Shown here: piece by piece, positions 14,681-60,085 of the stretch
Layout: each line of letters opens with the position of its first letter
How positions within the stretch are numbered: the stretch's first letter is position 1
DNA from: Trichoplax adhaerens
Lineage: Eukaryota; Animalia; Placozoa
Reading direction: 5' to 3'
Length of the DNA: 64,000 nucleotides
NCBI RefSeq assembly: GCF_000150275.1
Contig: NW_002060968.1
Span: 105,797 to 169,796 of the forward strand
Notes under the pieces: model-generated
Told to the model about the DNA's origin: nothing
The model's database searches: none
Seen by the model: only the letters and a program-made list of their open reading frames with translations
Translations under genes and position numbers: made by a program

Positions 14681-16689
14681 TCAAATTGCCACTATATCGA
14701 TTTTACATTCAGGTGGAATATATTTCATTTTCTTTTTGTCTTGAATGAAAATTTTTCCTTGGCTGAAACAAACCAAGGCAGGATAGTTTTTTTGATGACG
14801 TGTTTTATAATTTATCAACACGAAAGAATCGTCGGAGTCGACAAATTCGAAATTATAGCTGCATATGAATGTGGGGGGAATTTTCTTTTCGATGTGACGA
14901 ATTTTTTCTTTTAGAGCCGTCGAGTTGTAATGGTTAGGGATTGCCTTGGCGCTGTCTCTCAGTAGTAAATCCTGCAACATAACAGATAAAATGCATTATT
15001 GTCATTAGCTTCTTTCAACCTGTAAAATTCTAGTAAAAAAGCCATGTTAAGTACGAATATAACTATACTTGTAGATGTGAATATTCCTATCATTCAGCAA
15101 GTAAATCCTACTTAGTTTAATAATTAAGAATTTTAACATAGACTAGCCATTAATCCTCAAATCACGGATTGATAAAGTTGTCAATAGCAAGTTCATGTTC
15201 ATCTCTATCACTAGTTGATTTTCTCTACCAACCATCGCTATCAGAAATAAATTTACTGGCATATCTTATGCTATGCTTACCACAAATACCAAATCGTAAT
15301 AATATGGATTTTGTCGCTGCTGAAGGCATAATAAAGAAGATGGCTTTCTATCAACCATATGCAATATCCAAATAATGCTTATAGCGCTACGTAGCATCGT
15401 GAAATGTCCTAGAATAATATGATAGGAATTTAAAAGCATAAAATCGATAAGAATCAGTCTTCTATTCGTATTGTATTGCACGATTGATATGCTCTAGCTT
15501 AGGTATTGACTGAATCATGATCAAAGAATAAACGTAAAGTATGCTAGCGTAGACTTTTCATCGAAGCAACAGTAGTTCATAATACGATTATGCAGAATCA
15601 AGTATAAAAATACAGACTACAATCGTGGAGCACCTCTCCATATTCCCGAGCTCTAATCTTAATTTCCTGATGATACCATAATTGAAGCGCTTTTACTCAT
15701 TTATGCTAGTAGAAATGATCAACTTACCAATATCAGGATTGAGAGAAACTTGAGGTAGATTTGTATCTGATTCACCTAAATAACCAGCCCTATTTCCAAT
15801 AACGAATGCTTGATCACTTTTACTTATATAGCCATCCATACTCCGGTACGCGAATTCATTATTGCGTAGAAGATCTGTAAAGATAAATATTTCATTGATC
15901 TTACTTGGCCATTAGCCAAAACTATTCCGATTAGCGGCGCATTTATATCAATTATTGTTAATACAATTAAGCAAGCATGAGATCAAGTAAAAGGAAGTAA
16001 TGTCATGGAAATAAAGGAGTAAAGTGAAAATAGATACCGTATCTTTAATTAATAACAGCCAAAATAGAGTGCTTATTATACACACAGCTTTCTATTAAAA
16101 GATTCATGAGCTACTTACGATTTTTATGAAGATGAGAACGCATTTTTTCTTCAATTTGCCGTGGATGCACCGTTGTAAACTTCCTGTTAAAGTGCTGATA
16201 TTTCAATACTTTATAAACACTATGATAGTTAAACGATTTTAGGGAAAAATGTATTTGAAATTTCTTTGTAACAATATAATCCGCTCAATAGTGTAAATTA
16301 AAACACCAATGCAAATAATAGAACTAATGGGCCTGATAATTTTATACTCCTACAAGGTGCTAAAATGCAATGGAACGATTTCGGCAGTAGTTCTGTTTAA
16401 AATTCTTTCTTAGCGATGTAATTCTCTCAATAACGCCAACAAAAACTAATCTAACGATCAGATTTATGAGCTTTACAGTTATCGCCTCATTGCTTTATAT
16501 AAGCTACTTAATATCTCAGTTTTAATTCCACTCTTGCTGTCTTCTCTATAAGGAAACGAAACTGTTGTTGTGTACCTAAAATGAAATAATTTATTAAGCG
16601 TATCCAAAAATTCATTCAATTATCACAATATTAGTTTAAACAATTGATGTTTACCGATGAGTTATCATCACTAATGTCTTCAGTAACAT
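14681..16689 (-). CDS. FGF/IL-1-like beta-trefoil family copy 1: exons 16183-16119, 15874-15728, 15408-15281, 14971-14681. Candidate first exon 16689-16655 (221 aa total); alternative ATG at 16143 gives 196 aa
   Basis: Spliced product ..KFTTVHPRQIEEKMRSHLHKN|HLLRNNEFAYRSMDGYISKSDQAFVIGNRAGYLGESDTNLPQVSLNPDI|GHFTMLRSAISIIWILHMVDRKPSSLLCLQQRQNPYYYDLVFV|DLLLRDS...FICSYNFEFVDSDDSFVLINYKTRHQKNYPALVCFSQGKIFIQDKKKMKYIPPECKIDIVAI*. Canonical splice sites; core exons 147/128/291 nt. 5' end uncertain. Confidence 0.8.
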
Positions 16690-19600
16690 ATAGATCCATA
16701 TAAAGAATAAGCAACCCTTCCAAACCAGTCCGGAATAAAAAAATATCTTGCTTTCTCATGGCCAATAAATTTCAAAACCGAAATGGCATTTATTCTCTAT
16801 GACAAAATAAAAAATGGTTCCAAGTTTGACTTCTTCCAAATTTGTCACATCTTTCACAACATGCAACGGAATGCAAACTATTTTGATGCCTATCTTGTAT
16901 CCCGGCTTATAAGTCAACAATGTTTAAATGTATTAGTATACAGAATACGTGGCGCTACTTCTCAAGTCATTTAAATAATTAATTCAATTTTAAAAATTGG
17001 GTCAATTCAACAAAAAAAGACGCCGGCAGTTTCATGACTTAATTAGCAATAGCAGATAATCTCTTGTTCACCCATTTTACTTAGCGTGGTTTTAAATTTG
17101 AGTTGACAACACAAACTTCAACTATAGTCATTTAAATAACTTCTACAAATTTAATATTCCATTACTGTCCGTATACTTGTAGCATAACAGGCAATAATGC
17201 AATACGTCTACGTGTTAGATTGTTTGTAAATTTAAAATTACGAAACTAATTCAGTTTCGGTTAAAGCCAAGTGAATTAGTTTAGATACCAAATTCGTAGG
17301 CAGCTCAAAGATTAGATCGTATGATTGTAATTAATCACTTGATCGGTGATGTTCTCATGCATTTTAAAGGAGAGCCTTAAGCGATACTCATATACTTTTA
17401 GATCTAAGAATGTACGATAGCTAAGATTTTTTATTAGTATAAAATTCCGTTTGCATATGCTCTGTAGCTGCTTGCGTAGATACCCGTAACATATAGATAG
17501 AAGATATAAATGCCAATGACTTTTAAAATAACAAGAATTCTAGATTTGACTCTAGTGAAGACTGGTGCTAGTGTTTAACCGACGTTGGAAACAGTTTCTT
17601 CGAGTATGTTACTATAGTAAAGCAACAATGGCATAGTTGTAATATATAATGAACTCATATTAAATGTTTTACAAAGAATTTAATAACAATAGAATTTAAA
17701 AGTGCTTACATCTAAAAAAAGTAAACAAAAGATTAATTGCGTCGCAGGAAAAAAATCATGCATTACCTACAAAAAATCTATGTTAAAAAAGAACTGAGGT
17801 AACAATTAATTGTAATAGGATCTAAAATTTAATTGGTAGCGAAATAAATAACTGACACTTGTGCTAATAAGATTATAAATAAGAAATCTATGTCTAAAGA
17901 TAGCGGTATCAAACTTGATCATATCTTTAATAAGATTTAAACCTGCATTTAAGTGACAATAAAATAAATAAAAAATTATCATGTCAGCAAAAATTAAACA
18001 GATAGAATTTACGTTCATGGCTTTGACTTCAGAATTGTAATCAAACTTTTACCCTATCTATAATAAGATTTAAAGCTACATCCAGCTAAGAATAAAAAAA
18101 CAAATCATAACCATTTTCCGACAAAAATTATAAATAAGGAATCTATATTTTTGAACTATGATGTCAAAATTTTCATATCATAGCCACAAGATAAATGCTA
18201 TTTGTTTAACCCTATTAAGTTGCGTTTCATCAGTTATTATACAATTAAATTTACCTGTATTCAACTTCTATAGTTAAAGTGATCACAAACACAAATACAG
18301 CTCCTTCTCTCGAAAATGGTTCTATGAACGTTACCCTACCTAAAAAAGTAAAATATGAAATTTATGATAAAATTACGTTACGTACATCATCATCCAAGTT
18401 CTAGAACACTAGAAAACAAATAGATCACGCTAGTACATAACTTATCTAATCAGGCCCAGTACTTCCTGTACCTAAATTGATATAAAACGGCCTAAAAACA
18501 ATTTTTGGAGATGTTATCCAAAAATTTTTTCTTACTTTACTATTAGTAGATAGCATAGTTAAAGTAGCTGCAAATTTTGAAAGCATGCAGGAAAAACACT
18601 AATCACTTTCTTCTTATACTGCATTGCCTATTTAGCTGTATAAACAAAAACATTATCTAATCATGGTGTATGTATTACAGATTGCATCATTCATTGCTTC
18701 GTTCGTTTATAATCTATCATGATCAACTTAATAGTTGATAATTATCTAGAAGTTTAGGTACATGGTCTTGCGCATCCAGTTATACTTTGCAATTCTAGAC
18801 ATATCCTGCAATCCTGTTTTCCTTCTATTAATAGATACTACTGTTACAATAGATCTTGCTTTGGCAGCTTGCTGAGAACCACTAGCTTTTTTCTGTTACT
18901 ACAGTAACTATCAAGTTATATAGTCAACAACATTATCCGATCATAGTTTGTATCTCAGATAGGTTTCATCGTTCATTACTTCATTCGTTTGCAATTCATC
19001 ATGATCAACTTAATAGTTTGCAATTAAGAACTACATGATCTTGATTGCTTAGCTATAGGTTGCAAACAGATATATAAATATAAATCATTGCATGTATACT
19101 GTTTACCTATTATCTGCTCTCTGCAAAATATGCATAATTTATAATATCCAATCAGAATTAACTTTATCATCATGCTTAAAATTAACGATAAGCAAATGCC
19201 GTGATATAGTGCGAAATATATCTTAAACTTCCTTTATTTTACTGTAAACGGATAATAAGGTTAAAGCAGCTCCGTCCTTATCATCTTGCTAATAAAATAC
19301 TAACTCTTTTCTTCTTGGACCGTAAACAAAAGAATAGACATAAAAACGTTATTAATTATTAGTTTATGTCATAAACTGTTTTACATCATTCGTTACTTGA
19401 CGTATTGGCAATTAAAAAAGACCTGCTTACAAAAAATTCACTTTAATGGCTGCCAACTGTCGATTACATTTTACAATATTGCTAACTACTTTTAGAATCT
19501 GCTTACATGGCGCTGTTTGGCAAACAAATTCAAAGATATGCTTTATTCATTTGAAATTGAATAAAAAATAGCAATATCTGTAGTTTCTAAATAGAATATT

Positions 19601-20799: not shown

Positions 20800-22560
20800 C
20801 TAAGTATTCACCAAAAGTATTCTGCATTCAGAAAGAATGGAGTTATATACGTATTTTATTCCATCAAGCTTTATAATCATTCTACTATTAAAACAGACTG
20901 CTTTAAATTGATATTGGTTAGGTCCATGAATCCTGCAAATACTCTAGACCAAGATATTTGCCGATTCGGGCAAATAGTAATCGCATTCAAAGCTACAGAA
21001 GTATTTGGATTCAATTTCCTCTTCGATACGTTGTATTTTATTACATAGTTGATTCTCGATTATATTTACGCTATGATTCAGATACAAATCCTATATAGTA
21101 CAAAATGATGACATTTAATTATTAACCCTAACAAATTTTAAAATCGCTAAGTTTAGTAAAACCTCATCAAATGTTATACAAGCACAGTATATTAATTTTT
21201 GTCAATTTTTTTAGGAATTCAGCATGTGGCACGCTAGCGAAGAAATATCAACATCGCGTTGCAATCCATAATCAAATTAAGGTTTAATAAATTTCCTAGT
21301 AGCAAGCTCAGCTTTACTGTCAATCATTAATGGATTCCTATCTAGTTAGCCAAATTATTAATAATCTTGTTATCAAAGAGAATGAAATTCTTACCTCAAA
21401 TACCATCTCATAATGAAAATGATCTTGACGCTGATGGAGGCATAAAAAGAAGATGGTCGTTTCCCAACCACTTGCAATATACAAAAGAGTGTCATATTGC
21501 TAAGTATCAATATAAAATGCTCTGCAGAAAGGATATGGGAATGATGAAGGATGAAATGGTTAGCTCTTACTCCTATTGATGAATGGTAATGACTAACTTA
21601 CTTGTATCAGGCACTTGAGTTAGATTGGCATCGATTCTACCTACGAAACCATTATTACTTCCAATATTTATCGCTTGAATAGTTCTTTGAATATATCCAT
21701 CACTACCGCGATAAGCAAATATTTCTCCAATTATGTCATCTATAACATACGAGATGGAACATTAACGTATACTGTTTATTCCTGACCATAAACCCAAAAA
21801 TTAGAAACCAATTTATTCAATCCCAATCCTTTCTATGCAGTCGCTGTTCTTATCAAAGTCAATTCTTGACCGATACTATATAACTGTCCATGCTAACTTA
21901 CAAATTATCTGGATATCAAGTATGAACTCGCTACCATAGTGATATATTGTGCTAATGATGAGATTAAAGCGGGAGAGAAAAAAGATCGAATAAAAAATAA
22001 TTTAAGTCCTCCTACAGAGATGAAGCAGTAAAGGAGCAAGGTAATAAAGAATAAATATTAAAGATCGATTTTAAGCTGATCAAGTGCTCATTGAAAAGAT
22101 TAAAGAGCAACTTACTATTCCTAACAGTATCATATTCTCCATTATGCCAAGGATATACAGTAATTTTCTTACTACTTGAATACTGATATCTTAATCACTT
22201 TAATTGTGAAAGCAGTAATTTTTATTTAATATCGTGATTATGTAACTCGCTCAGGGACGACAATTAAAGCTAACGGAATTATCAGCCCTTGTGAGTCTTA
22301 TAGTTTCTCTCGGCAGTTCTAGAAAATATTGCTTTATATTCCATGCCTATCTCCTCTCTTATTGTCTTATTTAATAGAAATAAAACTGTTTCAATACAGC
22401 AAATAAAGGAAAATTTATTAAAAAAGCCTTAGAGAGCTGATTAAATAATGGCTTATACTTAGAATAAGTCGTCACAACATTCTACTGTAATATATAATCA
22501 CTCCTAATATGTTTACCAAGATGCTACCTTAGCAGTCTTCTTTTCTATTATGTCAATCAT
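20800..22560 (-). pseudogene. FGF/IL-1-like family copy 2 (closest to copy 1), disrupted: exons 22560-22517 (candidate), 22171-22116, 21739-21602, 21521-21395, 21090-20800
   Basis: Exon DIIGEIFAYRGSDGYIQRTIQAINIGSNNGFVGRIDANLTQV aligns to copy 1. The middle exon is 127 nt instead of 128 (1-nt deletion in the A-run at 21444-21448, just before LCL). In-frame TAG at 20946-20944 in a 291-nt last exon. Confidence 0.85.
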
Positions 22561-24338
22561 TCATAAAATAAAATAGAAACTGTTTTAATTTATCATATTG
22601 CGACAGGTACTTCAACAGTATCTAAATTGCTTAACGAGAATCATATGCCAAATTAGACACGTTATTTAAATTAACTCTGTGCTAAAACTAGACCATTGAT
22701 AAGAATAATAGCTCGCCTGCAGTGAACGACGCCAAGTATCAGTTAGTATTTCAATCTCTTAAGGATTTTATGTTAACTTTGTGTTCTTCTAAATTATAGC
22801 CTATGGCACAATGTAATTCCTCAGTGATATAAATAATTTTACAAGTAAAGAAGATCTTATTCTATAGTAATCTAATAGAGACTTGCAATATTCTATAAAG
22901 AATAAGGTTTAAAAGGCACTTGCAACCGAAAATAAAATAAACAAATGCTGTAGTTGTTCCAGATCATTACATTGCAGTGCAAAATTGCGAACATACGAGC
23001 GTATAAATATATGTCTTCAATCAAGATAGAGTTAAGGATTACTTTTATCCATGTGTAATAAAGATACTGAACCTCTGCTACATAGCGTTTTGTATGAAAT
23101 TATGGCTACTTTACAATAGAAATCATCTAAGAAGTGAGGGTGTTCTTTAGATTTACCTCGTTAAGGCGAGATATCGACACCTTTTCTTCTTCACTACCGT
23201 ACAAAATTTTATATAGATTACTACAGAAATGATCTATGAGCAATTGCCTAATCTAAAGAAAGGAAGTTAGATAGTCTATCGAGATTGAAAAAATCTTTTG
23301 ATGCTACTATCCTCAGCTTTGACATAATATTTCAATATTATAATTTAAAATAGCGCTATCACAACCTACGCTTGCTATTAATTTACTGCTCATATTTTCC
23401 TACGGCGAAGACAAGTTGGAATTGCATAAATGATAATTTTTCATCGGTATAAATTATCAAAGATTGAAGAACTAAAGTTAAAACGGATTCATTTCGGATT
23501 TGAAGTCTGGCCATAGAAATTATCATATCTCTCTATTATCAAGAACTGCAATAAAATGAAACTCAGCATATGTGTAAGGGCTTTTCAATAGATTTACATC
23601 GATAATAATTAGTTGCTGCCCTATCTACAGAATCAATCTTTTAGAAAGCCCAATAACTTTCGTCGTTAATTATTAGTCTAAAATATCATCACATCCAATG
23701 ACTGCTCATTTAATAATTCATATGGCAGTTATTCTGTAATTATATCAAATTCTTCATTATTTTGAGAACAAGAATGGATATTATTTTTGGACAAGTTAAA
23801 CAATCAGAGTACTTTATTGATTACATTGTTGATTTGCATAAATGTAAGGATTCTGTTATTGGGTGAAAATGAACGATGATATTGCTAATTATAAAGTCTA
23901 ACAGACAACATTGATTATTCAAACAGATTCCAAGCTTGAGCAATGGGTTGATATAGGTTAAATAACGTAAATAAACATTACAACAACGGATCTGGCTCAC
24001 TGTAATAGGATTTCAGTTTTCATTTCTATAATGTCTATCACATACTTGACTAATTTTAGTGTCAATTCTATTTCTTTTCGTTTCTCTTATCGTAATATAC
24101 AGCATTTTTGCCATACATCAGAAAGCTATGCATAAAATTGATATTTGAAACTTTGATTTAGGTGATAAGATAGATAATCAGCACCAATATATCTTAATTA
24201 TATTATTTCTTACTGTCATATTCGTCAGACTCCATCTAGCAGGTATCGATTAGCCGTTTTATAAATTGGTTTGGGTTGTAATTGGTAAATCGATAGGGGT
24301 AAGCTTATTATTATTCATCCTTACATATATTCCATCCA

Positions 24339-27300
24339 TTAATTATCGTACTTTGTGACAGGTAAGATTGAAAAGATGCAGTCTCGTGGAATGTAGTCAC
24401 TAGGTCTTTTGAATAAAGTTGCAGTACCTTGCGCAAAGAAGAAAATGGTATCATTCGGGTGATAATCGCCATCAACAAGTTGGAATGCCATTTGCGGCTC
24501 CCCCATAAAAGGCTTAAGCATGAGCATAGAAAATTTCCAGATGACATCATAGCTTGTTAATGTCTTTATCCTATCCACTATTCGTGTGATTATATCTCTA
24601 GTATCGTCTTCTTCTATGGCAGGAACACTCTAAATATGTGAAGAAGATTTAGCTAATACTATCAACTGCCTATTTGTAAGTACTAATGAGACTGAAAATA
24701 TCCATCGCACGCAAGTACAAAAGATAAAAATGAAGCCAAACTGTAAGCTTGGATAGAAATGAGTGGCTTCAATACCTTTACTTAACAAGACAATACAAAA
24801 TAATTTGGATAGAAATAATAAGATAATAATTGATTTAAATTAGCCCTTAGTAAATAACTTTTAGGGTTAAGTGTAATCATGCGTAGACCAGGGAAAAAGG
24901 GAATAGGGTAAAATAATGTCTTAAATCATGGTGTTATATTAATAAAATTAGTATTAGGATTTATGATTATTTTTTCTCGTTCTTGTATGGACGACTATTT
25001 ACTCTTTCGAATTCGAATACTACCGGTAAAGAAAAATATTGTGTGTATTGAGCTAAATTTGGAAAATATTGTAAGCCGTGATAACATATTATGCAGAAAA
25101 CAGTTCTATTCTAATGATGCTCAAATCTTAATAGAATGGACTTCACTATTTCATATAACTTTTTCGACAGGGAAACACTCTTTAATGTATAATTGGCATT
25201 CCTTTTGACGAGAGTACAGGTTCGGAAAGTTAAGAATTATGAGTATGTTCGTAAAATGCTATGCTGATAAAAATTATAATCTACAATGGTATTACAATTT
25301 CTTATAATTTTTCTGTACGAAAGAATTCGGTATTACACCAGAATCAATCTGATCGGGACTGGAAAGTTTTAAAGAATAAAGAAGCCTTTATGATGACGGT
25401 TAATTTTTAGAATTCTCTCTCAAGATTTTCTTATTTTAATAAGTACTATAGCTTTAAAAATAACTTAATTTGGTTTAATTATAGTAGGTTTAACTTAATA
25501 TCGTAACACATTGTTAACCTGACTACTTTATTCAGGTTAGAGCGTAAGAATATTCTGTAGCATAATTTTGATAAGAGTATCACGATGTTAGATTGTAATT
25601 TATGTGATATAATTAGTTAGTATAATACTCCTGCTTTAATTATGATAAAAACTAGTAGCCAATTTTGATTACAAAGTGCAGTAAAGATAATGTTACTTCG
25701 TTATTGAATACTGTGTAAACCCAAATATTTCGATCTGGGTTCTAATTTAAGATTGTTAGTGAGCCTTAGTCTTTTTTGTATATGTCTTAGACCGTAGGGA
25801 AGTAAAATTTGTAGATTTAGTAATTTTGAGAATCTAGGGTACAATTTATCTGATCATATGTGTTTAATGGCTAATTTTATTTAAAATAATTTAGAATAAT
25901 AATTTGATAGCCTAATGCCACCAACTGCCCTAAATTCGTGAGTAAATTGTATTTTTCGTTGATAGTTTGACTTGTTAAGGCAGCAATTCTGCCCTTATTG
26001 TAATTTTTAATTGGTTTTTATAAGTTGTTTGCTAAATTTATAAATTATTGGTGGTTTCTCCTAATTTTCCTTGAGTTAGAATTAAAAATTTGTTAGATTT
26101 ACTTGAACTTTTGCGTCCATTCTTACTCTTAGATGAAACTACTATTTAACTCTGAAAAAGAATGAAATCTTATAAAGCAACTCAAGTACAGTACATTTAA
26201 TTGCAAGTAGCTTATCGATAGGGGAAAGTTCATTGCAACAAAAATGATACAGTATGTTATAAAGTGTAAAATCACAGAATATTTAAAATAATCTTGCTAA
26301 CTGCGCTACAGTCTCGTATTAAAAGTGCTTATTACAATTATTTATGCAGATTAATGTTTGAATGTAATACTCATTCTTACGTAATTTATTGCAAGATCAT
26401 GTATAAAAGACTGGAAATTACTTGCATTCTTATAGTATATTTATCATTTATTTCTTTAACTTACTAAGTAGGCAACTTCGTAGTTTTTGCTTCTATGGTG
26501 TCGAACTAAGCACAATACAGCTTCTGGTCTATTCTTAGTTATAGAAAGAAAAGCAGTTTTCTCTTCATCCATAGGTCGCATTTCAAGATGTACTAGAAAT
26601 GGAAGGAAGTAACTTTAATAATTTCAAAAATATCGGAAATAAGGAATACCGTAATCTACAATTCTTTAAACATAAGCCTGTCGTAAATTTATCTAATAAT
26701 ACACTATCATTTTCCCTACATTAAATTCTTATACATGATAAAATTATAAGATCAAACATTATTCATAGCCGGATAGGAAGGAATTATCTATAATTCTAAA
26801 AACTTTAAGTCTGTCATAACTATCTTATATTAAATTTTCCTGCGGTATGTTCATTTTCGTTATAAATTATGTCATCGTACGTTAATGCCTGGATGAGACG
26901 AATTATTTTTAATTTTATCACTTTTAAGCTCTTAGTGTGTAGTGGTTTTACGAATACAAGCCTTATATTAAATTAATAATGACAGAAGCAAATGCGAGAT
27001 CAAATATTAGTGTTAAATTAACTTGCAGTAAAGTTAGTTTTTACCGCATGGCATAAAATGGCAAGATACTGCTGCTTACAACTCTACAAATTCATTAGCT
27101 TAAAATCCTTTTTTTTACTAAGTGTTGTTTAGGATTTTATTCATTTATTTAGAAACAAATTATTATGATATATATTTAGCTCGTAATAATTGCACTTGAC
27201 GGTATGCTAGCCTGCCATTTGCCAAACATCATGGCTGAAGTAGTAAATCGAATACCCGTGATCGGTATCAGTAGTGAAGTACTACGGCTCATAACTCTGC

Positions 27301-28214
27301 AACTTCGTTACCTTATAATTATTATTTTGACTTTATGTTAACTTGTAAGAAAGTTAACTGTTATCTTATGTAAGAAATGGTGAAAAGCTACTGTTTACAA
27401 GTCTTTAAATTTACTAGTCTATAAATATTATTCTGATTATAGGTTAACTTGTAGTAAAATTAATGGTTATGTCATAGAATAATGAAATGCTGCTGTCTAG
27501 ATTATCTTAATGATGGATAACAGTTTTTATAAATGGAAAGGCTGCATCGCTAATAGAATATTAGTTCCATATAGCATAAAATCAAAATAATTTGCTTGCA
27601 GATAACTAGTTAAAAAGCTATACCATCGCTAAGGTATATATATATGTTACGGCGTAACATATATACTCCTTAGCTGTAACTGGCATAGTTTAAGTTATAA
27701 TGACATAGATATTGGGTAGAATACCAACATCGAAAAGAAAGCTTAATCATACCAGCTTCAGGATCCAATTTATCTATTATGCTTGAAAAAACGGCTTCAA
27801 AACCAATACTGGATCCATATGGTATAATTTCTGTACTGCGAATCAAATATTGATCATTCCACAGTAACATAACTGTTCGGGCACTAGATGCCTCAGAAAC
27901 TTTCGCATGTTCATCTGCTAAAAGCCGAAATCAGAAGATGAATCTTAACAATTCCATCTTAGAATCGAAAGTATCTATAAGTAATTTCATTACTGCCATG
28001 GATACGGGTAATAATACTAGTGTAAATTTCGTCATATAACTAATTGAATTTCCCATCTAACTAGCCAATTTATATTTTTAAGACAACAAAATCAGTGTTT
28101 GGAATTTGAGTTCTATCTCACTAATCCTACTCGAATATAGATTTTTTAAGCATAAATTGCTGGTTGGAAAATTTTGTAACAGTTCCTAGTAAGTCTCGTC
28201 AATTTACCCGACAT
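24339..28214 (-). CDS. FGF/IL-1-like family copy 3, 196 aa: exons 28214-28208, 27917-27753, 26592-26465, 24629-24339
   Basis: MS|ADEHAKVSEASSARTVMLLWNDQYLIRSTEIIPYGSSIGFEAVFSSIIDKLDPEA|VHLEMRPMDEEKTAFLSITKNRPEAVLCLVRHHRSKNYEVAYL|SVPAIEEDD...VIWKFSMLML...IFFFAQGTATLFKRPSDYIPRDCIFSILPVTKYDN*. Exons 7/165/128/291 nt, intron phases 1,1,0. An upstream in-frame stop precedes the ATG. Confidence 0.88.
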
Positions 28215-28594: not shown

Positions 28595-28602
28595 TATTTA
28601 TA
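28595..28602 (-). promoter_or_regulatory. Candidate TATA box of copy 3 (homologous TATAAATA at 35215-35223 for copy 4)
   Basis: TATAAATA on the - strand at equivalent positions in both paralogues, upstream of a conserved non-coding exon donor (~28460 / ~35080). Confidence 0.45.
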
Positions 28603-30392
28603 AAGGTCGAAAAATTTTATTTTTATTACGATACTCACTGCAGTTAAATCTCTATAATATTAATAATTAGCCTTTCATATCAATTAACCATAGCTTTTAA
28701 TATCTTTTTATTCTCACTTCTCCCAGAATTATGGTTTGTGATTTATCTAGAATATTGATTATTATAACATTACGGCAATATGAATAAGTTATAAGTCATT
28801 GGTAAAGATAGCGGTAAGCCCAAATTTTTTTAGTTTTTTAATTAATTTTTTAACTAATCTAACGCCCGGATATCTGATGAAGGAAAAGTTTAATGATGTG
28901 GATTTTATTGTAATTTCCTTCATTAATTAATCAGTCTACGAGATCATAACAATAAAGTTAAAATTAAAGCTACGAGAAGTGTATAAAATCTCACGTAATA
29001 AATAAACTATAAATTAGAACGTGAATGTCCAGCAAGGAAACCTGTTTTCTATACGAGCTGCCTTTGCTTTGATGAAGTATCAGTCCTAAGGTCATTTTGG
29101 TGACTTAAGAATGAAAAAAAAATTAATTATGCTTAAGGCCGCTGTACACAAGAAAGTGTTTACTGCATGATAACCTTCGTTAATAATCTGAGATACCAGT
29201 TGGCAAATCACTGCAATACGCCATTCTACAATGAAGATACGTAGACTACAATTCAAGGCGGTATCGGTCGGTAGATATCCTTTTGCAAGGCATTTCTCAT
29301 CTCGTTAGGCAACATGGATAGCTTAATCACCCATCTGTAACTGGTCTTTTCCACTGCTTTATTATACAGTAAGTGATCCAATTTAGAATCATTCCAATTT
29401 TGTTAATTGGCGTTGGGCTATAGGTAGATTGTGTCCATTGAGTATTATTGGATATAGGGGAATAAATTGTCCTTCAAAAGGCAATGTTAGACGGGAAGTA
29501 CTTTATTGAAAACATTTTAAATAATTAATGATTGCATTCTGCTTTATTAGCTAATCGCTAGCCGAAATAGATATTGTTGACTTAGCTCCGTATTTCAATT
29601 CATCCATTCCATGAGAACTATCAAATATTCAAATGGTGAAAGAACAATCTTAATCTGCCACTTAAAGTTTTTCAATAGAATTTTTCGAATAGATAAAAGT
29701 AAAGCATCAATAATCTGTTATTATTACCTTCAATTTGCGATAATATGTTTGTTTAGCCATATATATAAGTAGATTATAAACATCGTCATCATGATGATCA
29801 AAAATGTCTCGAACATTCCTAAATGAATCGCCAATTACCTTAACATCTAGGGTAATAAAATTTTCTAGTATATAGTTGAAATAAAAGTCATTAAGGCAGT
29901 CAGAAATCAACGGGATAATTTGTCCTCGAACTCTTCTTTATTATTAGTCAAAACTGTTTAGATCGCTATTTCTTTGTAACGTTTACATTTCGAATCTGAT
30001 TTAAATTTGATAATAGCCCTTTAGCTAATGTGAATGCTAACTCAATTTGGCTTTGCTTGGTGGCTTATAAAATTTTTAGCGCAGATCTTTAAGTTGCAAT
30101 TTTAAAAGCAATATAAAAGTGATTATCAGTAAAAGAATGCGGACTTCAAAATTTAGAAATAGATTTCAAACGATATTGGTCTTTTTTGTTAAAATGGAGA
30201 TTGCATTTTCTTTTTTTGGCGCTTTTATAAATTAATAACACAACAGAAGTAATGTGAATTGCAGAAAATTGGCTAAAAATTTAATCTCAAGCTAACATAT
30301 CAAATATTAGACGATAAAACAGGACTGAAACTTAAGTATTCAGTCATTGCATAAGAAATTGAAGCGGAAAGTTAATAAAATGCATTTGGCTT

Positions 30393-30669
30393 TGCGATGG
30401 AGGGTTCGAAGAGTCGGATAATATGGTTTTAGTAGCCATGCAGAGAATTGCACAAGGAGCCTAAGAAAAGAGGATACTTTATTGTAGATAGTAGTTAGGT
30501 ACAGTGTGATAATTACGGTAGGTCAGCGTGGTAGCTGCTGTGAGTAAAATGTGAATACTAACTGTAACTAATAATGCAACTTAAGAAATCTAAGGTAGAA
30601 AACGGCAGTATTTATAGCTATGGCATTAGAACACATGCAGAGAACATGATTGTAGGATTAGATACAACA
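30393..30669 (+). mobile_element. Interspersed repeat R1 (~275 bp, TG...CA ends), second copy at 56411-56686
   Basis: Near-identical direct copy of 56411-56686 (GATGGAGGGTTCGAAGAG...GGATTAGATACAACA) with unrelated flanks. Confidence 0.7.
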
Positions 30670-31169
30670 TATACCATAACAGGTTATTGAATAACAGATG
30701 ATTGTAGAAAATAGCGAGGACTGTAATAACTAAATGTAGTAAGCCAAATTTGAATGTAGAGCGAACAGACTGTAGATATGTCTAAATATAAGATCAATAC
30801 AACATGTCTATAGAGTAGAATATAATTACAGTATATTCTAAATACACTACATTAGTACTCTTAGTTATGCGTTCATAGTTGTTCACTTTGAGTTATTCTT
30901 TGGAGGTAGCTAATCTTGAATCATTAGGCAGTTGTTTAGGATCTATATGTACTAGGTTATCCTTAAGTCTTCATTACATCTAGTGTCTTGAGGCCGCCAA
31001 TAAAGTATTTGCTAACCTAGGGGTGCTAAGTCTGTCCGTGAGTTAGTGAAGCAATTAATCAGGCTAACCCAATAGTCGGTGTACTTTGTGAACTATATAG
31101 TTCTATCTTGGTCAATATATTCCGAACGATAACAGGTATGTGTTGGACTAAGTGCTAGAAAAGTAAGAA

Positions 31170-32370
31170 ATGTTTTCACTCATTCTTTATATGAAATTTA
31201 ATTCGTCTTATTTCAAAAAGTCTCCACATATTCCTATATAATGTCTCTACAAGTCTGCAATTTAATAAGACTTTACTAGCCTATACAATGCAAGTATAAT
31301 AAACTTACGAGCCATTTTTTTCTAATCCGATTATATGAGATATTCATTTATTGATATCCATTTTCACTCATTCTTTAAAAGATTTTTAGTCGTCTTATTT
31401 CAAAAAATCTCCACATGTTTATATAAAATGCCTCTATAAGTCTGCAATTTAATGAGACTTTACTAACCTACAGTATACCATGCAATGATAACAAATCTAC
31501 GAGCCATTCTTTTCTAATTCGATTATCGTAGCTTTCTTACTGATTTATAACTGAAAAGCGTTATAAGTGGTAGCCATAGCTAGAGAAGCAGTCAAAAATA
31601 ATTATTAGTCAAACTATTTCTTTTCTAAAGCGATTACCAAAGCTTTCCTACTAAACTAATACTGATAAGAAGTATCAAGAGGAGAAATTGCTAGAGAGGC
31701 AATCGTAGTCACATTTCACTCATTGTTTCGAAGATTTTAGGCCATTTTATTTCCGAAAAGTTACCGCATGCTTCTATATAAACTATATGCTTAGTACAAG
31801 TCTGCAATTAAATATATGTTTCGTAATGCAGTTCCATGTAATTGTCATCTATACTGCACCTACGGATCATTACTTTTCTAAAGTAATTGCCGTAGCTTCT
31901 TTAATAAATTAATACTAGCAAAAGGTATTAGTAGGAACAATTGCTTGGGAAGCAACCAAGAATAAGTTTTACTGCAGCTATCCCTTTTTAAAATGCTTAC
32001 CGTAGCTTTCTTACTAAATTAATACTAGCGAAAGGTATCAACGGGAGCAATTGCTAGAGAAGCAATCAAGAATAATTTTCATTCGAACTATTCCTTTTCT
32101 AAAGCGATTACCACAGCTTTCTTGCTAAATTAATACTGATAAAAAGTATCGGTAGGAATGATTGCTAGAGAAGCAATCAAGAATAATATTACTTTTCTAA
32201 CGCGATTAACGTAGCTTTCTCTCCAAATTATTGCTATCAAGAGGTATCGGCGGGAGTAATCGCTAAAGAAGCAATCAAGAATAATTTTCACTCATTCTTT
32301 AAAATACTTTTACCCGCCTAATTTCAAAAAAATTTCATATGTTTATATAAAACACCTCTGCAAATGTACA
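31170..32370. repeat. Compound tandem repeat (~190-bp and ~110-bp units)
   Basis: TTTCACTCATT recurs near 31175, 31362, 31714 and 32286. GCTAGAGAAGCAATCAAGAATA-like motif recurs about every 110 bp between ~31580 and ~32285. Confidence 0.8.
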
Positions 32371-43707: not shown

Positions 43708-45151
43708 TTAGTCCATGACCAATCTTATATCACTTTCAGGTGGTGTAAAACCCATCACACGATCTACCAATCGAACTTTTCCATCAGCATCGAAGGCTAC
43801 CAATTTGATAGTTTTGTCACTGCTACTTTCGTTGCTATTACTTTCCTTACTAGCGGCTATCAATTGGACTATAGTCGATCGTGCGTCTTTATTTTTACAA
43901 GTATTGTAAGATCGGTAAAATAACCAGACAATCTTATCTGACTCTTTCTTATTCCATTCTTTAAATATTTTCGTGATTTCCGATATATCTCTGTCTATTT
44001 TCTATAGCATGTAAGAATTATTTTAAATCAGAAAATAACAGTAGGTAATGATGGAAATACTTTACTGCGGTACTTATTCGTAGATTATTATTATCATGGC
44101 TAAATAATACTAAAGTCAAACAACTATGAAATACTTTAAATGCATTTCATTTTTTTATGATACTATTCTATTAAACTTTACCGAACCCTGTTACATTCAA
44201 TCTGTGATAGAAAAATTTATTAAGATTAGCTGATGTCTTATTATAAATGAAAAAACCACGAAAGGATCTGATTCTAAATATCAAATTAATCATATTACTT
44301 TTTCTAAATAACTTCGAAAATTTTATTACGGTATACAATCGTAAGGTTATACAGAAAACTAAAATTCAGTCATTTTTTAGACATACACCTCGTACTGTGT
44401 TTTAAGTTGATTCATAAAATACAGTAAATATAGCTAGCAATCAACATTGTAAGCATAAGTGAACTGCTTAAGTATGTATATTGCACCATTGTGCAGGATT
44501 GCCTAACAGAGGTATTTCCATCACAGACTTACCACAAAGATCGGATCATAACTACTCGTATTTTCTTTGATTTTAATCAAGCATAGCAGATATTCAGGAT
44601 CAGATTCAAGGATGATACGTGAATTAGCAATATTGACTTGTTGAAATACGAATTCAGCTATAGTAAATTGATTATCAATGAAAATATATTTTTAAATTGG
44701 TTTTAAAGTTTACAATAAAAATAATTTGACCAATTAAATGGAATAATTGATCGATCTAAGAAGAGACATTTACCATGGTCGGGATTTTCATCAACCTCAT
44801 CTAATCCGTCAGCAAAAGAAGCAGAACAGGCAGTAAGAGGATTGAGATCATACAATTCATCACTTCGTTCGAAGTAATGTCCATCTACTTCAAAGTATGC
44901 TTCTTTCGGGACAGTGACCAATTCTAGAGTAGAATATCAAATTGAGTTTGTTAGTGTCAAATTAGATGTTCTATTTCTGTTCCACGATTGTTTTTAATAG
45001 TAGCCAATTAATTCTACGTAAATAAATGCTGACAACTTTAAACCATTAACAAATCAATTATTTACTCGTGTCGCCATAAATCACATATTAATACTTTTTG
45101 TGGACTGAAAAATTAGCAAATAACCAAATCACCTGTAGAAGTAGCTTCCAT
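43708..45151 (-). CDS. FGF/IL-1-like family copy 6, 195 aa: exons 45151-45133, 44923-44774, 44657-44533, 44001-43708
   Basis: MEATST|ELVTVPKEAYFEVDGHYFERSDELYDLNPLTACSASFADGLDEVDENPDH|AEFVFQQVNIANSRIILESDPEYLLCLIKIKENTSSYDPIFV|KIDRDISEITKIFKEWNKKESDKIVWLFYRSYN...KLVAFDADGKVRLVDRVMGFTPPESDIRLVMD*. Exons 19/150/125/294 nt, phases 1,1,0. Confidence 0.88.
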
Positions 45152-50320: not shown

Positions 50321-51373
50321 TTATCGTACGACTAATCTTAGGTCACTTTCAGCCGGCATAAAATCTATAATACGATTTACCAATCGAACTTTCCCATCAG
50401 TATCAAAGGACACTAATTTAGTTCTATTTTGTCCAATAGTTAAGTGGACTATCGTCGATCGTGAATCCAGATCATAGTATTGTAGATTGAATAACCAGAT
50501 AATAGTCTCCGGATCTTTCTTATTCCATTTTTTAAATATTTTTGTAATATTCTCAATATCTCTATCTATTTCCTATAACATTCACGAATCAATGCAAATC
50601 AGAAAATGGCAATAGATAGTAGCAGAAGTACTTTGCTGCTTGTACTGTATTTTAACTTCATCAATAAAATGCTGTAAACACAAGTATAGCTAGAAATGAA
50701 TATTGTAGGCAAGTAGAACTTCCTACGTATACTTATTATTCAGTATTTTCATCACAAACTTACCACAAAGATTGCATCATATTTACTCTCTTCAATTTTT
50801 TTTAGGCATAGCAGAAGTTTAGGTTCAGATTGTAGAATGATGCGTGAGTAAGTATTATCCACTAATTTAAATTCGAATTCAGCTATAATTAATTGATAAT
50901 AAATGAAAGCACATATTTTAAATTGATTGTACAGTTTATAATGATAAAATTTGAGGAATTAAATTGAATAATCGATCGATGTAAGAATCGATATTTTACC
51001 AGGAGAGGAAAGACTATTAACTTCCTCCAGTCCGTTAACACGAGTAGAATAATATCCTTTTAAGCACCCCAGATTATATGGTTTATTGCTCCTTATTAAG
51101 TAACTGGAATTATGTCCTGTTTCAATTAGCATTTTTTTACAAGAGCCTATTGAATCTAGAATAGGATACCAAACAGAGTTTATTAGTATCGGATTAGCGC
51201 TGTCCTATTTTCATTTCAATACGGAGACATTTAAATCTACACAAATACCGGTAATGTTGAGCATTACCAAACAAGAATGCACTTTTACAGCTATATATTA
51301 TATAACAGGTTGATACATTTTTGTAAATTAGAAATTAGCCATTAAACAGTTTACCAGCAGAGATAAGCTTCAT
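50321..51373 (-). CDS. FGF/IL-1-like family copy 7 (paralogue of copy 6), 181 aa: exons 51373-51355, 51155-51000, 50882-50764, 50572-50321
   Basis: MKLISA|DSIGSCKKMLIETGHNSSYLIRSNKPYNLGCLKGYYSTRVNGLEEVNSLSSP|AEFEFKLVDNTYSRIILQSEPKLLLCLKKIEESKYDAIFV|EIDRDIENITKIFKKWNKKDPETIIWLFNLQYYDLDSRSTIVHLTIGQNRTKLVSFDTDGKVRLVNRIIDFMPAESDLRLVVR*. Exons 19/156/119/252 nt. Confidence 0.88.
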
Positions 51374-54300: not shown

Positions 54301-55870
54301 TATTTTGATTAAAAGATTGCTTCAGAAATAGGACTGAATAAGGTTTGACGTTAATCAGTAAAGAGTTTGAATAGTAAAATACTTGCGATAGCTATAATAG
54401 TAGCTGTTTTCTACTTTTTTAGCTGTTCTCTTACTCTATATACTTATTTTATAAATATTCTAAAGGAATAAATACTGTTCATTATTTGCATCATAATTTA
54501 GTATTATTAGATGCGAGTATTGCAGCAGATAAATATCAATTAGTGAATCCGTAATAAATATTAAATTTCTTTCGCCAATTTATCAGACTCTATCACAGAT
54601 GCTAACATTGAATCATTAATATGAAGGCTTATTTTGAAATTAAGTTAAAGAAATAGCCAAGTATCATCTCAAAGCAGGCCATAAAATACTGTTTTTTGTG
54701 AGTTGGAATAAACAGTAGTGCTTTATTTGAACATCGAGCATATATAAGGAAGATATTCATAGACTAGAAATATTAGTTAGAACTTAGAAATAGATCTACT
54801 TATTATATCGCTTTCTTATTTTAAACTAGCTTATTTAAACTTGAAAATTTTATAAACTGTAATGAAGCGGACTTTTATCTCTATTCAGTTTGTCTAGCTT
54901 TATTGTGAGATGTAGAAGTAGGATGGAATAAGATGCAGTCCATTTTATTACACTGCTACTATGGCAATCTTTTATTGTTGGAAAGGCGGTTGAAAGTAAT
55001 AGATCATGTCATACTATACTGTGGTATACTAGAAGATAGTGTTCCGTGCACATGATGAATAATGATGTAATATAACTGCTAACGAAAATTTGTAGCATTC
55101 ATCTGAGATTTTATTAGCTGAGAAGAATTATTTCTTAGGTATAGAGTTATAACAGAAATCGAAATTGTAGTGTTTACTTCTAAATATGGCTTAGTCAATT
55201 CTTTATAAAAGGCTATTTCCACGACACTGTAGCATAAATACCGATACTTTAGTAATTTACTCTGTAGAAATTATTTTATACTCTAGTTATATCGTGTCGT
55301 AAAATTACCAAAATAGAAGTAAGCTATTCTCATTACTCAATCGCATTTATGAATAATTTTCACTTGCTATACTTTCATTATAAAAGGTATCTTGATGCAT
55401 CTCTCTCTTTAATTCGCTCTGTTTGTCATATGGTAAGCTTGCATGCGTTATCTTTTCTACTTTCGGATAGCTCTTAGACTCACTTATGGGCAGTTTGCAA
55501 AATGACCGACTTCGCATACGGTCACGTTCATATATACAATATAGCATTATGTGGCTTTTCTTCTCAAAACAACTGCAATAAAAACTACTTTTCACTTATT
55601 TAAATCTATTGTAATTCCTCCAAGTATAATATATACGTTATAATATCTTCACCAAATATCACACAGACTATACTGGCACTTTATTATTGTAACTAAGACT
55701 GAAAGCTAGAAGAGTTATCAGTAGGACCATAAAGTAAATCGGCATTTATAGTCAACATGATTTTAGTTGGAAAATAGCCAAGAAAAATTATGCAGTACTT
55801 TTGAAACTAAGAATAATTGCTGGTGAAACTTCATAATAACGTATCAATGATGTAATTAAGTAATATTCAA

Positions 55871-56287
55871 CTGTGAGGTTGATAGATCAAGCATCTTCAA
55901 AACTTTCGAAAATTAAGATTTATTGAACAAAACCTCCTTTACGAAGATACAACGTAATCGATTAGCTGAGGACCTCTAACGAGAAAGAACTATCTTACTA
56001 TACTAAACTACTCGCTTATATACTTTTCCGTGTTTACAGTCTTAGCACCTTACTTAATACACACTTCAGTATTAGCATCTCAAATACACGATAGTTTACA
56101 CCTTTCATGTGAAGCTCTAGTGTGAGCACTGTAGCGCTGCTCTTCAGAAGGATTACAGTTACTAAGCTAGCTATATTTAATACTCAAGCTTCGAACGAGA
56201 ATATCTATCACATGTTGAACACAACACCTACGGTAGACATTACTAAATATACCACCAACTTAGAATTCAATATTACACTGTCTTACA
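55871..56287 (+). mobile_element. Interspersed repeat R2, second copy
   Basis: Inverted near-identical copy of 39728-40144. Confidence 0.75.
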
Positions 56288-56410
56288 TGAACGCTCGAGA
56301 AAGTTTCATCGGAACAGTAAAAGATGCAGTTTTTTATCTATAGAAATAATCTGGAGTTAGAAAATAGTTATGTAGAATCATTCCTTATGAATTTAAAATT
56401 ATAGCCAAAC

Positions 56411-56686
56411 TGTGATGGAGGGTTCGAAGAGGCAGATAATGTGGTTTTAGTTGCCATGCAGAGAATTGCACAAGGAGCTTAAGAAGAGAGGATACTAAAT
56501 TGTAGATAGTAGTTAGGTACAATGTGATAATTACGGTAGATCAGCGTGGTAGCTGCCGTGAGTAAAGTGTGAATACTAACTGTGACTAATAATGCAACTT
56601 AAAATTCTAAGGTAGAAAACGGCGGTATTTATAGCTATGGCATCAGAACACATTTAGAGAACATGATTGTAGGATTAGATACAACA
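56411..56686 (+). mobile_element. Interspersed repeat R1, second copy
   Basis: Direct near-identical copy of 30393-30669; begins TGTGATGG and ends ACAACA. Confidence 0.7.
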
Positions 56687-58948
56687 CTAGTGCAAACTCC
56701 CGTCGCTTTGCTGACGGTTTACATGTAAATGTATCTGTATTTAATAGCAATACAAAATGTCTATATTTAAGAGTACATTACAGTTACAGTACAATCGAAA
56801 TACACTACACAAACAAACTAAACTTACACTTTATTAATAATACTAGTAAAATTCCAGTTCAAATGAACAGGTAAATATTCAACACAAAGCAAGACATTAA
56901 AAGAAAATTTACAGCAAAATTATTTCTTACTACTGTACAAGTGTACATATGTTTGCTCTATAAGAGTAATTAAACTTATTTCAGTATACGCATTATATTA
57001 CCTCTAATCGAGCACACTGGTCATGGTACGTCGCTTACTTGCTTACTGGGTTTAACATGTTTCCTTATATGATCTAGATTGAGACTATAGTATACAAAAT
57101 TTGTTGCCATTTTTTATGTCAGAGTTTTTTTCTTACAAAGTCCGAATGTTAGAAAACATTCTTATAGGCAGTTTATTATAAGTGCATTCTATCCATAAAG
57201 TAGTTCATGATTCGAAAATAACCAAGCAGAATTATTCGTTAAACTGAACTAATATCAGTAAAATTAAGTAGCAATCTTCATCAATGCTAAGATTAAGCTA
57301 GGAGAATTATTGATAAAGCCTTACATTAAACTGATATTTATGTATTAGGTGCAATTTTTGTAGTAGTAAGAATGAAACCGAAAATAATCATGCCATAAGA
57401 ATAGAAAGTAATAGCTAGAGAGACTATGCCACCATTCTATCATCAATATAACTGCCTGAGTACTAGATATTCTGGATGTTGGTAATGATTTCTATTGGCA
57501 ACAGAATTTATTAACCCTTCTTCCATTAACAAGCTGGTAGATATCATAAGCTACTTGTAATCGGTTATATGTACAATTATGGTAATTTAGCGACTATAAG
57601 TTTGTAGAGATTGAATCATGTTATGATCATTATATGTTCTGTAATAAGGAACCAACAGAACAACTATCTTCTATAGAAATGTTGTAGCTTCTTGACGTGA
57701 CAAAAATGGGGCTGCTACGTCGTCACATCTTCAATAATAAATTGTTAACGAATGAAATATATCGATGGTTCATTTTTTTAAAATCGTTCGCATGCTCGCA
57801 AATAGCTTTCAAATCCATAAAAGTAATATAAATTCCGCCATTGTCAATCATACAGTATAGTAAGAAGACATCGATTACAACCATCATTATATCCTCGTAC
57901 GGAAAATATGCCGTCTTACTAATTACGATAGAGAAATGAAGACAAAATATTACAGTTTCTCATCATCAAATATATTGAAAGTAATTTTTAATAGCCTCGA
58001 GTCACAATTATGATTTTGTTAGATGTTGTTATATATTGTACTAGCATACTCAGTCTAGATGTTTGAGAATTCGTTAACGCGTTGTTAAAGCGCCAAGTGA
58101 TGCATTAGTTGGCGGTTAAATTTCATGCTTTATTTTATGAGTTTACTTCATACTGAACGTGATTGAGTCAGTAATTCCATCATCATTTTATATCTACAAA
58201 TATTCTTATAATTTATTTTTGTGCATGTTATATTTTAAATAGCATACGATACAGCTTTATAAAGTCCCTATGCACTGCATAGTCAAAGAAAGATATAAGT
58301 GCCCAGCATACACTATTTTCTTTGATTCGATAACGTATAAAATAAAAGTTATTGGCTGATTGCAATTACAATAAAGTTTGGTCCATGTTTTCCTACAATA
58401 TACTTGACAATAAAGAATAAATAATGATAAAAACAAGTTACTAAAACCACAAAAAGCAAAATAAAGAGTTTAAAACAAAAGGAAAATTATAATTAAAACT
58501 ATTCACCGACATTCTAGAAAATAGAGAGGATAAGCTGACTGTATGCTGTGCTTAATTAATCTAATGTTTAGTATGCGAAATAACTAAGCACTTGTACTAG
58601 TTCACCATTTTTTAATACATTATACACGCAAGTTTAAGTAGCCTAAAAACATATAATTTCATTAAAGTTGCGATAGCACAATGAAAATCAGATAGCCTAT
58701 TGCTGTTGCTTAGGCAATAAATAAATATAGTTAAAACAGGAACTCTTATAAAAATTCAGCGGGAGGACTTAATTGTTGTATCAAAGCCCTCGATAAAATA
58801 ACAACGTGTACACCATTGCTACGAGAATATACTTTTACAGCCACTCCAGTTGCTATAATATCATAAAAATTAGAAATTTAGCCTTTTGTATCAGCTTTTA
58901 CATAACACGACCTAAATTTATGTTTGTTCTGCTTAATGAATTGAAATT

Positions 58949-60085
58949 TTAAGCCGTAGATAGAAATATTGTGCTTTCGGGAGGCAAATATTTATTACGC
59001 TTCAAAGATTTGAGACAGACATTTCCGTTAGCTCTAAAGCAGACTATCTTCATTGAATCGTTGCGGCATACGAGCAGACGGATTGGAGTTAATCCATCAT
59101 GTCTTGATAAGTATTCGATATTAAATTTCCAAATTATAACAATACCATTTCGCTCTTCAATTTCACTGAACTTCTACAACAGTGAAGGCAAGACCTCGTG
59201 TATATCCTATATGACGACAGTGGAGTCAAAATAAACCACTTTACTTCTAAGCAATCTACGTATATATATATACATTGATTACAAAGTATTCCATATTGTA
59301 GAAACGTCTAATTAATCATTTCTCATCTACAAATTACTACGTAAATCCATCGATATTCGTTTTTCTTGTGACTCACTTTCCTTAAGCAAAGCAGCTGTGT
59401 AGGGACCAATTTTGAATTTACTGCTTCAATGCAATGGCTGATATTATCGTCGATACTTTTAGACGTGAATCGTACTATAAATTGAAACGGCAAATTTTTT
59501 TGAAAATTTAGGCAACGACTAATCAGCAATAATTTTAGCTTTCTACTGAAGTGCATTAGAGACCGATAGAATTTGCGGTGTGGTATACAATAGTCTACGT
59601 AGACATGCATTGATAAAATTAGAATATCAATAAATTAAATGCATGATGTGCTAGTGTGAGATAAATGTTTCTTCATATATTTATTATGATAATGTGAATA
59701 AAGTAAGTGAATATTATAATATTAAGCAATGTAGTACATTCTGGACACTTGCGCTTCCATAAATCTCGAAAAGCTAAAATTACTAAAAGTTTTAAAGTGG
59801 AGTATGTTACAATCCACCTAAGGGATAAATATTTCGCTGAAATACTATAACTGCCTCTTAATTAAACAAGAATAAAACGTTCAATCTGAGATAGTTACCA
59901 GTAGTTGTTTCTTCACCGTATTTATATATTCCCGCAAATGTGCAACCATGAGCTGTCAGTGATCCAAGGTCATGCATATAGTAATTATCACACCATGTCA
60001 AGTAACTTCTTAACCGTTGACTGTAAATGTAACAGCCGCAGAAGTCTGATGTAGATGATCTATCAAGTGTATCTCTATTACACAT
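58949..60085 (-). CDS. FGF/IL-1-like family copy 8, ~182 aa: exons 60085-59899, 59474-59338, 59173-58949
   Basis: MCNRDTLDRSSTSDFCGCYIYSQRLRSYLTWCDNYYMHDLGSLTAHGCTFAGIYKYGEETTT|VRFTSKSIDDNISHCIEAVNSKLVPTQLLCLRKVSHKKNEYRWIYV|KFSEIEERNGIVIIWKFNIEYLSRHDGLTPIRLLVCRNDSMKIVCFRANGNVCLKSLKRNKYLPPESTIFLSTA*. DLxxLTAxxxxFA is shared with copy 6. Intact only if the acceptor at 59174-59175 is used. Confidence 0.75.

Follow-up and report, generated by a model that had tools for sequence, protein, structure and literature searches.

A tandem array of probable trefoil genes in Trichoplax adhaerens

A 64,000-nucleotide stretch of the Trichoplax adhaerens genome (C1389:105797-169796; genome 105.6 Mb, 31% G+C), which we refer to as the window, contains eight co-oriented paralogues on its minus strand between positions 14681 and 60085. 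By our analysis these genes, G1 to G8, belong to a new beta-trefoil family whose kinship to the interleukin-1 (IL-1) and fibroblast growth factor (FGF) lineage is plausible. The reading that we favour, and to which we give an even chance of being right, is that the window holds the greater part of a tandem array of placozoan genes for small leaderless trefoil proteins descended from the ancestral trefoil gene of IL-1 and FGF. The cytokine function ascribed to the family when the cluster was first noticed, from the bare sequence, is putative only.

That original prediction had described eight co-oriented multi-exon genes or pseudogenes in a probably early-branching invertebrate. Self-comparison and iterated profiles over all stop-to-stop frames recovered eight copies of a penultimate exon, all on the minus strand, and exact matches to NCBI proteins identified the host as T. 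adhaerens. The predicted borders were also exact, 14681 being the G1 stop codon and 60085 the G8 ATG. Six of the eight copies look intact, with open frames (G1, G3, G4, G6, G7 and G8), and two are pseudogenes (G2 and G5). The whole array comprises 12 loci, four of them beyond the window and one of these apparently frameshifted in an A-run; with a solitary copy on scaffold C1414 the family has 13 loci in total. Its proteins are about 180-200 amino acids (aa) long.

The penultimate exon was located by profile and self-comparison in open reading frames (ORFs) at 15269-15493, 21341-21499, 26459-26614 and 33469-33633 (G1 to G4) and at 38478-38711, 44524-44691, 50755-50958 and 59326-59634 (G5 to G8). 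In all eight copies L-C-L is followed by Y-x-x-x-(F/Y/I)-x and then by a phase-0 donor, which reads GTAAG in seven copies and GTAATT in G8. In every copy read, among which the G2 border does not count, the exon opens at a phase-1 acceptor at the same codon. The exon ahead of it begins at a phase-1 acceptor and ends at a conserved phase-1 donor (G/GTAAG or G/GTATG), and six clear last exons begin right after a TAG or CAG acceptor. These last exons carry IIWKF, IVWLF or FICSY, then VxF..DG and (Y/F)xP(P/R/A)(E/D), followed by a hydrophobic strand, so that the motifs quoted for both exons were found as described. The exon plan common to the intact copies is a tiny ATG exon in most, then three exons, with introns of phase 1, 1 and 0. 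Wherever a copy was read, inside or outside the window, its last three introns have these phases, and environmental contigs keep that of the last intron too.

Three runs, each from a different study, yielded contigs of spliced G4 message that have four GT-AG joints (32999/33487, 33614/34378, 34541/34829 and 34927/35081). Translation of the joined message gives XP_002117702 (P0002) without a single difference, and an in-frame stop precedes the ATG. Spliced transcripts, on which the prediction depended, are thus documented for G4. Another run (X4) was DNA-like and was left out of the expression evidence, and the examined part of G5 had no contig in the three RNA-like runs. The ratio of nonsynonymous to synonymous substitution rates (dN/dS) was 0.29 for G3/G4 and 0.43 for G6/G7; the introns of these pairs are only 55-82% identical, and nearest paralogues are 49-72% identical. 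The family genes are under purifying selection. Since splice sites and phases are conserved and dN/dS is below 1, chance resemblance among the copies is ruled out. It is also very improbable that the units are decaying duplicates or annotation artefacts rather than functional genes. Two of the eight copies are broken, and G8 has neither a public model nor RNA support, as such an explanation would have it; against this stand the G4 mRNA in three independent runs, the open frames and conserved splice sites of six copies, dN/dS values of 0.29-0.43, the retention of orthologues by Trichoplax sp. H2, and environmental contigs in which divergent copies keep the exon pair.

As G3, G4, G6, G7 and G8 have in-frame stops upstream of the ATG and no hydrophobic N-terminal stretch (the longest hydrophobic run in the first 35 residues is at most 5 in the tested copies), these proteins are leaderless, in agreement with the claim made at the outset.

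The G6 protein is predicted to fold as a 12-stranded beta-trefoil

AlphaFold2, run for G6 on a 12-row alignment of database proteins, gave a model with a predicted local distance difference test score (pLDDT) of 81 and a predicted template modelling score (pTM) of 0.80, and all five models reached at least 70. Besides twelve strands the model has two helices, a short one at residues 47-52 and one of 14 residues at 104-117. The 50 matches that Foldseek listed for it were all beta-trefoils (E 5.6e-4 to 1.2e-2). So were the 50 listed by VIA re-alignment, which gave Z scores of 12.3-13.4 for Symfoil, the 30K/ENF-binding protein, HA33, CWRC, ThreeFoil and IL-18 (12.6). In an exhaustive VIA search of 48,161 chains the best 50 were all beta-trefoils (Z 11.2-13.4; root-mean-square deviation 2.4-3.9 Å over 120-151 residues), and 143 chains scored Z ≥8. 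A 12-stranded beta-trefoil, as originally proposed, is well supported by this model for the G6 protein, and the cluster's proteins probably all fold in this way.

Some results count against the trefoil part of our reading. The AlphaFold2 model of G4 failed (pLDDT 44), so that the fold rests on one paralogue, G6, and the ESM Atlas models were poor (pLDDT 0.32 and 0.37). They would fit an alternative in which the protein is no beta-trefoil at all, the G6 model being an artefact of the 12-sequence alignment and the true fold either another all-beta fold, such as a tubby/LOR-like barrel, or a new one. A language-model feature search with the solitary paralogue likewise pointed weakly (0.84-0.88) toward fungal tubby/LOR-like clusters, and hhalign between the three thirds of the family alignment detected no internal repeat (E about 0.2-0.4). 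However, the calibration of the feature tool puts scores below 0.9 at chance level, IL-1 and FGF are likewise without detectable internal sequence repeats, and the failed G4 model keeps the strand and helix order of G6. Together with the five G6 models at pLDDT ≥70 (pTM 0.80), the 143 chains at Z ≥8 and the restriction of the best 50 chains to trefoils, this makes a fold other than the trefoil improbable in our view. Sequence profiles gave no domain of any kind for eight full-length proteins searched against Pfam at E up to 10, no Pfam match for ten single exons, and only a chance match (E 1.5) in a PDB sequence-profile search.

An exact D-E-V-D, the classical caspase-3/7 site, occurs in three paralogues (G6 residues 45-50, window about 44790-44810; L002; L004), in the short helix between strands 3 and 4 and before the phase-1 intron. 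Other paralogues have DELE, EEVN or EKVD at this site. On the model a cut there would fall inside the fold, and the motif may be purely structural.

Intron positions and phases suggest a possible kinship to the IL-1 and FGF lineage

In G6, codons 7 and 56 are each split by a phase-1 intron, and a phase-0 intron follows codon 97. On the G6 model the codon-56 intron falls two residues before strand 4, just past the short helix, and the intron after codon 97 falls at the end of strand 7. The trefoil would therefore be encoded by three large exons, with strands 1-3 and the short helix in exon 2, strands 4-7 in exon 3, and a family-specific helix with strands 8-12 in exon 4. Human IL1B has an intron ahead of strand 4, at mature residue 40, and another where strand 7 ends, at residue 83; the FGF2 introns interrupt codon 60 (intron 1) and separate codon 94 from codon 95 (intron 2). 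Since the family has its phase-1 intron before strand 4 and its phase-0 intron at the end of strand 7, as in IL-1beta and FGF2, descent from the same ancestral gene is the most economical explanation. The likeness in exon plan to both genes appears to extend to positions and phases, in a comparison that uses the generally described strand borders of IL-1beta and FGF2 in place of a residue-level superposition. Among our analyses, intron positions and phases are the sole test that ties the family to the IL-1/FGF lineage. In published work on invertebrate IL-1, conserved phasing of the two central trefoil introns was taken as evidence of homology (PMC13736523).

The family resembles IL-1 in further respects. 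Its members have no signal peptide, and a trefoil of about 150 residues and 12 strands, as modelled for G6, occupies the last three exons. Its last three introns have phases 1, 1 and 0, of which the second, of phase 1, follows the short helix and precedes strand 4, and the third, of phase 0, falls where strand 7 ends; in IL-1 the last three introns are likewise of phase 1, 1 and 0, and the trefoil lies in the last three exons (PMC4880838). The paralogues form tandem clusters, as in IL-1, and IL-18 aligns to the G6 model at Z 12.6, with IL-18 chains at 12.3-12.6 over 136-140 residues. The corresponding exons of G3 and G4 measure 165 and 128 nucleotides (nt), compared with 165 and 131 nt in human IL1B. 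Unlike IL-1, the family has a 14-residue helix inserted between strands 7 and 8 on the model, its window copies lack a PDZ or pro-domain (one paralogue outside has an acidic extension of about 60 residues), and placozoans have no reported Ig-TIR receptor. The outside paralogue, TrispH2_008893 (262 aa; L004:7104-8588, C1389:186900-188384), has an acidic, serine-rich N-terminal extension before its trefoil and is the sole copy with such a pro-domain-like part.

The resemblance to FGF takes in the predicted trefoil itself (Z 11.2 to FGF4, FGF10 and FGF18, and 13.2-13.4 to FGF1-derived Symfoil designs), an intron of phase 1 ahead of strand 4 and one of phase 0 past strand 7, Y-L-(C/A)-(L/M) in strand 6, and the lack of a signal peptide in some FGFs, the compared family including the intracellular FHFs (FGF11-14). 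The family differs from FGF in its middle exon (119-137 nt versus 104 nt), in lacking the FGF core motifs and in carrying an extra phase-1 intron near the N-terminus. The FGF receptor (FGFR) and its docking proteins are also reported to be absent from placozoans.

A number of observations weigh against descent from the IL-1/FGF ancestor. The intron equivalence relies on generally described IL-1beta and FGF2 borders, and the comparison covered these two among animal trefoil genes. The links to both families that had been proposed were not recovered by profile: PF00340 (IL-1) had no match at E up to 10 in the eight full-length proteins or in single exons, and PF00167 (FGF) had none in full-length proteins, in single exons or in the whole genome in six frames. 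PF00340 also had no match in the genome in six frames, a blank that is uninformative because the control was silent everywhere as well. The (F/L)ES motif of IL-1 (PMC13736523) is not in strand 9 of the family, where residues 140-147 of the G6 model read STIVQLIA and the aligned columns xTxxxLxV; the conserved (P)ES of the family sits only before strand 12. The PDZ domain of most IL-1anc proteins was not found by Pfam in any member, and the N-termini before strand 1 are 6-17 residues long. Linkage to GCC2/ESD, the inferred ancestral locus (PMC13736523), was not found either, as none of the GRIP-domain or esterase-D-like matches is on C1389; they map to other scaffolds or at a distance of 1-7 Mb from the solitary copy. 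In addition, some authors hold that trefoil cytokines may have more than one origin (PMC5861070), and the origin of FGFR is placed in eumetazoans, that is, cnidarians and bilaterians (PMC7260276, PMC8662651). Finally, the best 50 chains span about 2 Z and do not separate lectin-type, designed, IL-18 and FGF trefoils, so that the fold search picks no subfamily.

Had the best structural matches been non-cytokine trefoils, the original prediction would have lost its ground. The top ranks are mostly of this kind, yet IL-18 (Z 12.6) and the FGFs (11.2) lie within about 2 Z of them, and the comparison falls cleanly on neither side. The same ranks bear on a rival explanation, in which these are beta-trefoils without special kinship to IL-1 or FGF, forming a lineage-specific cytosolic binding or defence family (lectin, protease inhibitor or toxin-like), and the intron match is coincidence. 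Z scores of 12-13.4 go to the 30K/ENF-binding protein, HA33, CBM13, ThreeFoil, Cry35/Tpp, amaranthin and fungal lectins, and fungal trefoil inhibitors (11.6-11.9) stand above the FGFs. Many cytosolic trefoil lectins and inhibitors (fungal ricin-B-like proteins, amaranthin, cocaprins) and insect 30K/ENF-binding proteins, which account for some of the best scores (up to 13.4), are leaderless, multigene and fast-diverging. The tandem growth, pseudogenes and fast divergence (49-72% identity) seen here are typical of a defence family, fungal cytosolic lectins likewise have no signal peptide, and no cytokine receptor is known in placozoans (PMC6321704, PMC7260276).

Yet the Trichoplax family shows no Pfam match to ricin-B, Kunitz, agglutinin or other trefoil families, and differs from the cytosolic lectins, inhibitors and 30K proteins in lacking sequence matches, QxW repeats and conserved disulfides. 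For ricin-B-type lectins specifically (PF00652, PF14200) Pfam gave no match, the threefold QxW was not found, and (I/V)W occurs only in strand 8. Two introns share position as well as phase with IL-1 and FGF, and a third shares its phase with IL-1, an agreement that would be unlikely as coincidence; the dN/dS values, well below 1, show no trace of an arms race. We regard a family of this lectin- or inhibitor-like kind as possible but doubtful.

What the proteins do can only be guessed at. They could be soluble cytosolic binding modules that act inside the cell, or they might be released outside the secretory pathway, for example on damage; a partner could be bound through the variable loops of the trefoil.

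Public models and related sequences

Against 1.84 billion representative proteins, a profile built from eleven last exons returned eight full-length family proteins of 167-262 aa and no convincing match in other phyla. T. adhaerens models exist for G1 (XP_002117701), G4 (XP_002117702) and G6 (XP_002117703), and cluster look-up together with a family-alignment profile search identified TrispH2_008885 to 008889 of Trichoplax sp. H2 as G1, G3, G4, G6 and G7. All public family models are labelled hypothetical or uncharacterised. Models of G3 and G7 were found only in Trichoplax sp. H2, with none in T. adhaerens, and no public protein was found for G8 in the search of 1.84 billion proteins. The description of the cluster as hidden thus stands in part: five of the six intact genes have public models, but G3, G7 and G8, three of the six intact genes in the window, are absent from the T. 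adhaerens annotation.

Four short matches were fragments, two of which were traced to metagenome and Logan contigs of 31-32% G+C; the traced contigs retain the same exon pair and phase-0 donor in divergent copies. The last-exon profile also picked up long bacterial proteins (P0007 and others), which have Ig/cadherin and propeller repeats and were rejected as compositional matches. A homologue search with the G6 last exon (97 aa) found none among targets limited to 170 aa, a length below that of most family proteins (167-262 aa). A literature text search for the TRIADDRAFT identifiers gave no match, and the only number match in placozoan cell-atlas supplements was unrelated.

Gene models

All eight models are on the minus strand. 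The joined models of G1, G3, G7 and G8 served for lengths, frames and dN/dS, and searches and folding used single exons or database proteins. G1 (14681-15874) has coding exons at 15728-15874 (147 nt), 15281-15408 (128 nt) and 14681-14971, the last with the stop; the model starts at exon 2, its 5' ATG exon not being placed on the sequence without reads. Its public models are TRIADDRAFT_61699 (XP_002117701), whose C-terminus is mis-spliced, and TrispH2_008885. The pseudogene G2 (20803-21761), a paralogue of G1, retains an exon 2-like part at 21576-21761 and an exon 4-like part at 20803-21090; its exon 3 has lost 1 nt, and its exon 4 is interrupted by an in-frame TAG.

G3 (24339-28214) encodes 196 aa in a coding sequence (CDS) at 28208-28214, 27753-27917 (165 nt), 26465-26592 (128 nt) and 24339-24629, and its translation reads the same as TrispH2_008886 when compared by eye, with no identity computation. 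The antisense frame of its exon 2 (27747-27824, plus strand), PIYLLCLKKRLQNQYW, scores E 1.5e-6 against the penultimate-exon profile; this match is probably chance, because the profile took up that sequence during iteration. G4 (32718-35176) encodes 193 aa at 34830-34836, 34378-34542 (165 nt), 33487-33614 (128 nt) and 32718-32999, and its protein is identical to XP_002117702 (TRIADDRAFT_61700). Its 5' untranslated region (UTR) exons lie at 35081-35176 and 34830-34927, the ATG is at 34836, and the 3' UTR continues below 32700.

The pseudogene G5 (37539-38677) has an intact exon 3-like part (38556-38677). Its last-exon-like part (37539-37800) can be read only with a frameshift and ends before the last strand, and no exon 2 is recognisable at the locus. 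G6 (43708-45151) encodes 195 aa at 45133-45151, 44774-44923 (150 nt), 44533-44657 (125 nt) and 43708-44001, its protein being identical to XP_002117703 and TrispH2_008888. G7 (50321-51373) encodes 181 aa at 51355-51373, 51000-51155 (156 nt), 50764-50882 (119 nt) and 50321-50572, and the start of its public model, TrispH2_008889, is 14 residues too late. G8 (58949-60085) is an open three-exon model of 182 aa at 59899-60085 (187 nt, with the ATG), 59338-59474 (137 nt) and 58949-59173, with a highly divergent first coding exon (profile E = 3).

Other features of the locus

The last two exons of G7 are repeated on a small contig (C977:412-971) with the same scores as the window copy, and this second copy is probably an unmerged haplotype. 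In the second gene past the window (C1389:175309-175572; L001:5513-5776) a change of reading frame at an A7 run separates the helix part of the last exon from its strand part, a break that reflects either a pseudogene or an assembly error.

A Gemin5-like multi-exon gene adjoins the cluster on the minus strand (window 1-11000), with domain matches to its WD40 first exon (10617-10994), the GEMI5 TPR domain (5163-5447) and the GEMI5 RBS domain (3308-4582). It looks like a housekeeping neighbour with no relation to the cluster. Two blocks, 12160-13500 and 31180-32320, have internal repeats that translate to repeated peptides on both strands and are probably intergenic tandem repeats; the first has a strongly negative GC skew. 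Dispersed repeats between the trefoil genes pair 30340-30790 with 56370-56880 (direct), 39680-40170 with 55860-56340 (inverted) and 23030-23240 with 62060-62870. They resemble remnants of transposons, and the growth of the array may owe something to them.

Implications for the origin of trefoil cytokines

IL-1-type cytokines were traced to cnidarians and bilaterians only in 2026, in a study that does not mention placozoans and whose search strategy was built on the PDZ domain, which the Trichoplax family lacks (PMC13736523). No transmembrane TIR protein has been reported in placozoans (PMC6321704). We tentatively suggest, as a proposal with distinctly less than an even chance of being right, that the family is a placozoan branch of the IL-1/FGF cytokine lineage in which the ancestral exon plan was kept without a known IL-1R- or FGFR-type receptor. 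If so, cytokine-type trefoils would be older than the cnidarian-bilaterian ancestor, and their first role would seem to have been intracellular or alarmin-like, before the classical receptors. Should the kinship fail, the cluster would still represent a protein family that is expressed, specific to placozoans and uncharacterised. With its 13 loci for leaderless trefoils and the IL-1/FGF exon plan, in a host reported to be without both receptor types, the family provides a concrete test case for whether IL-1 and FGF go back to one ancestral gene and what its job was before there were receptors.

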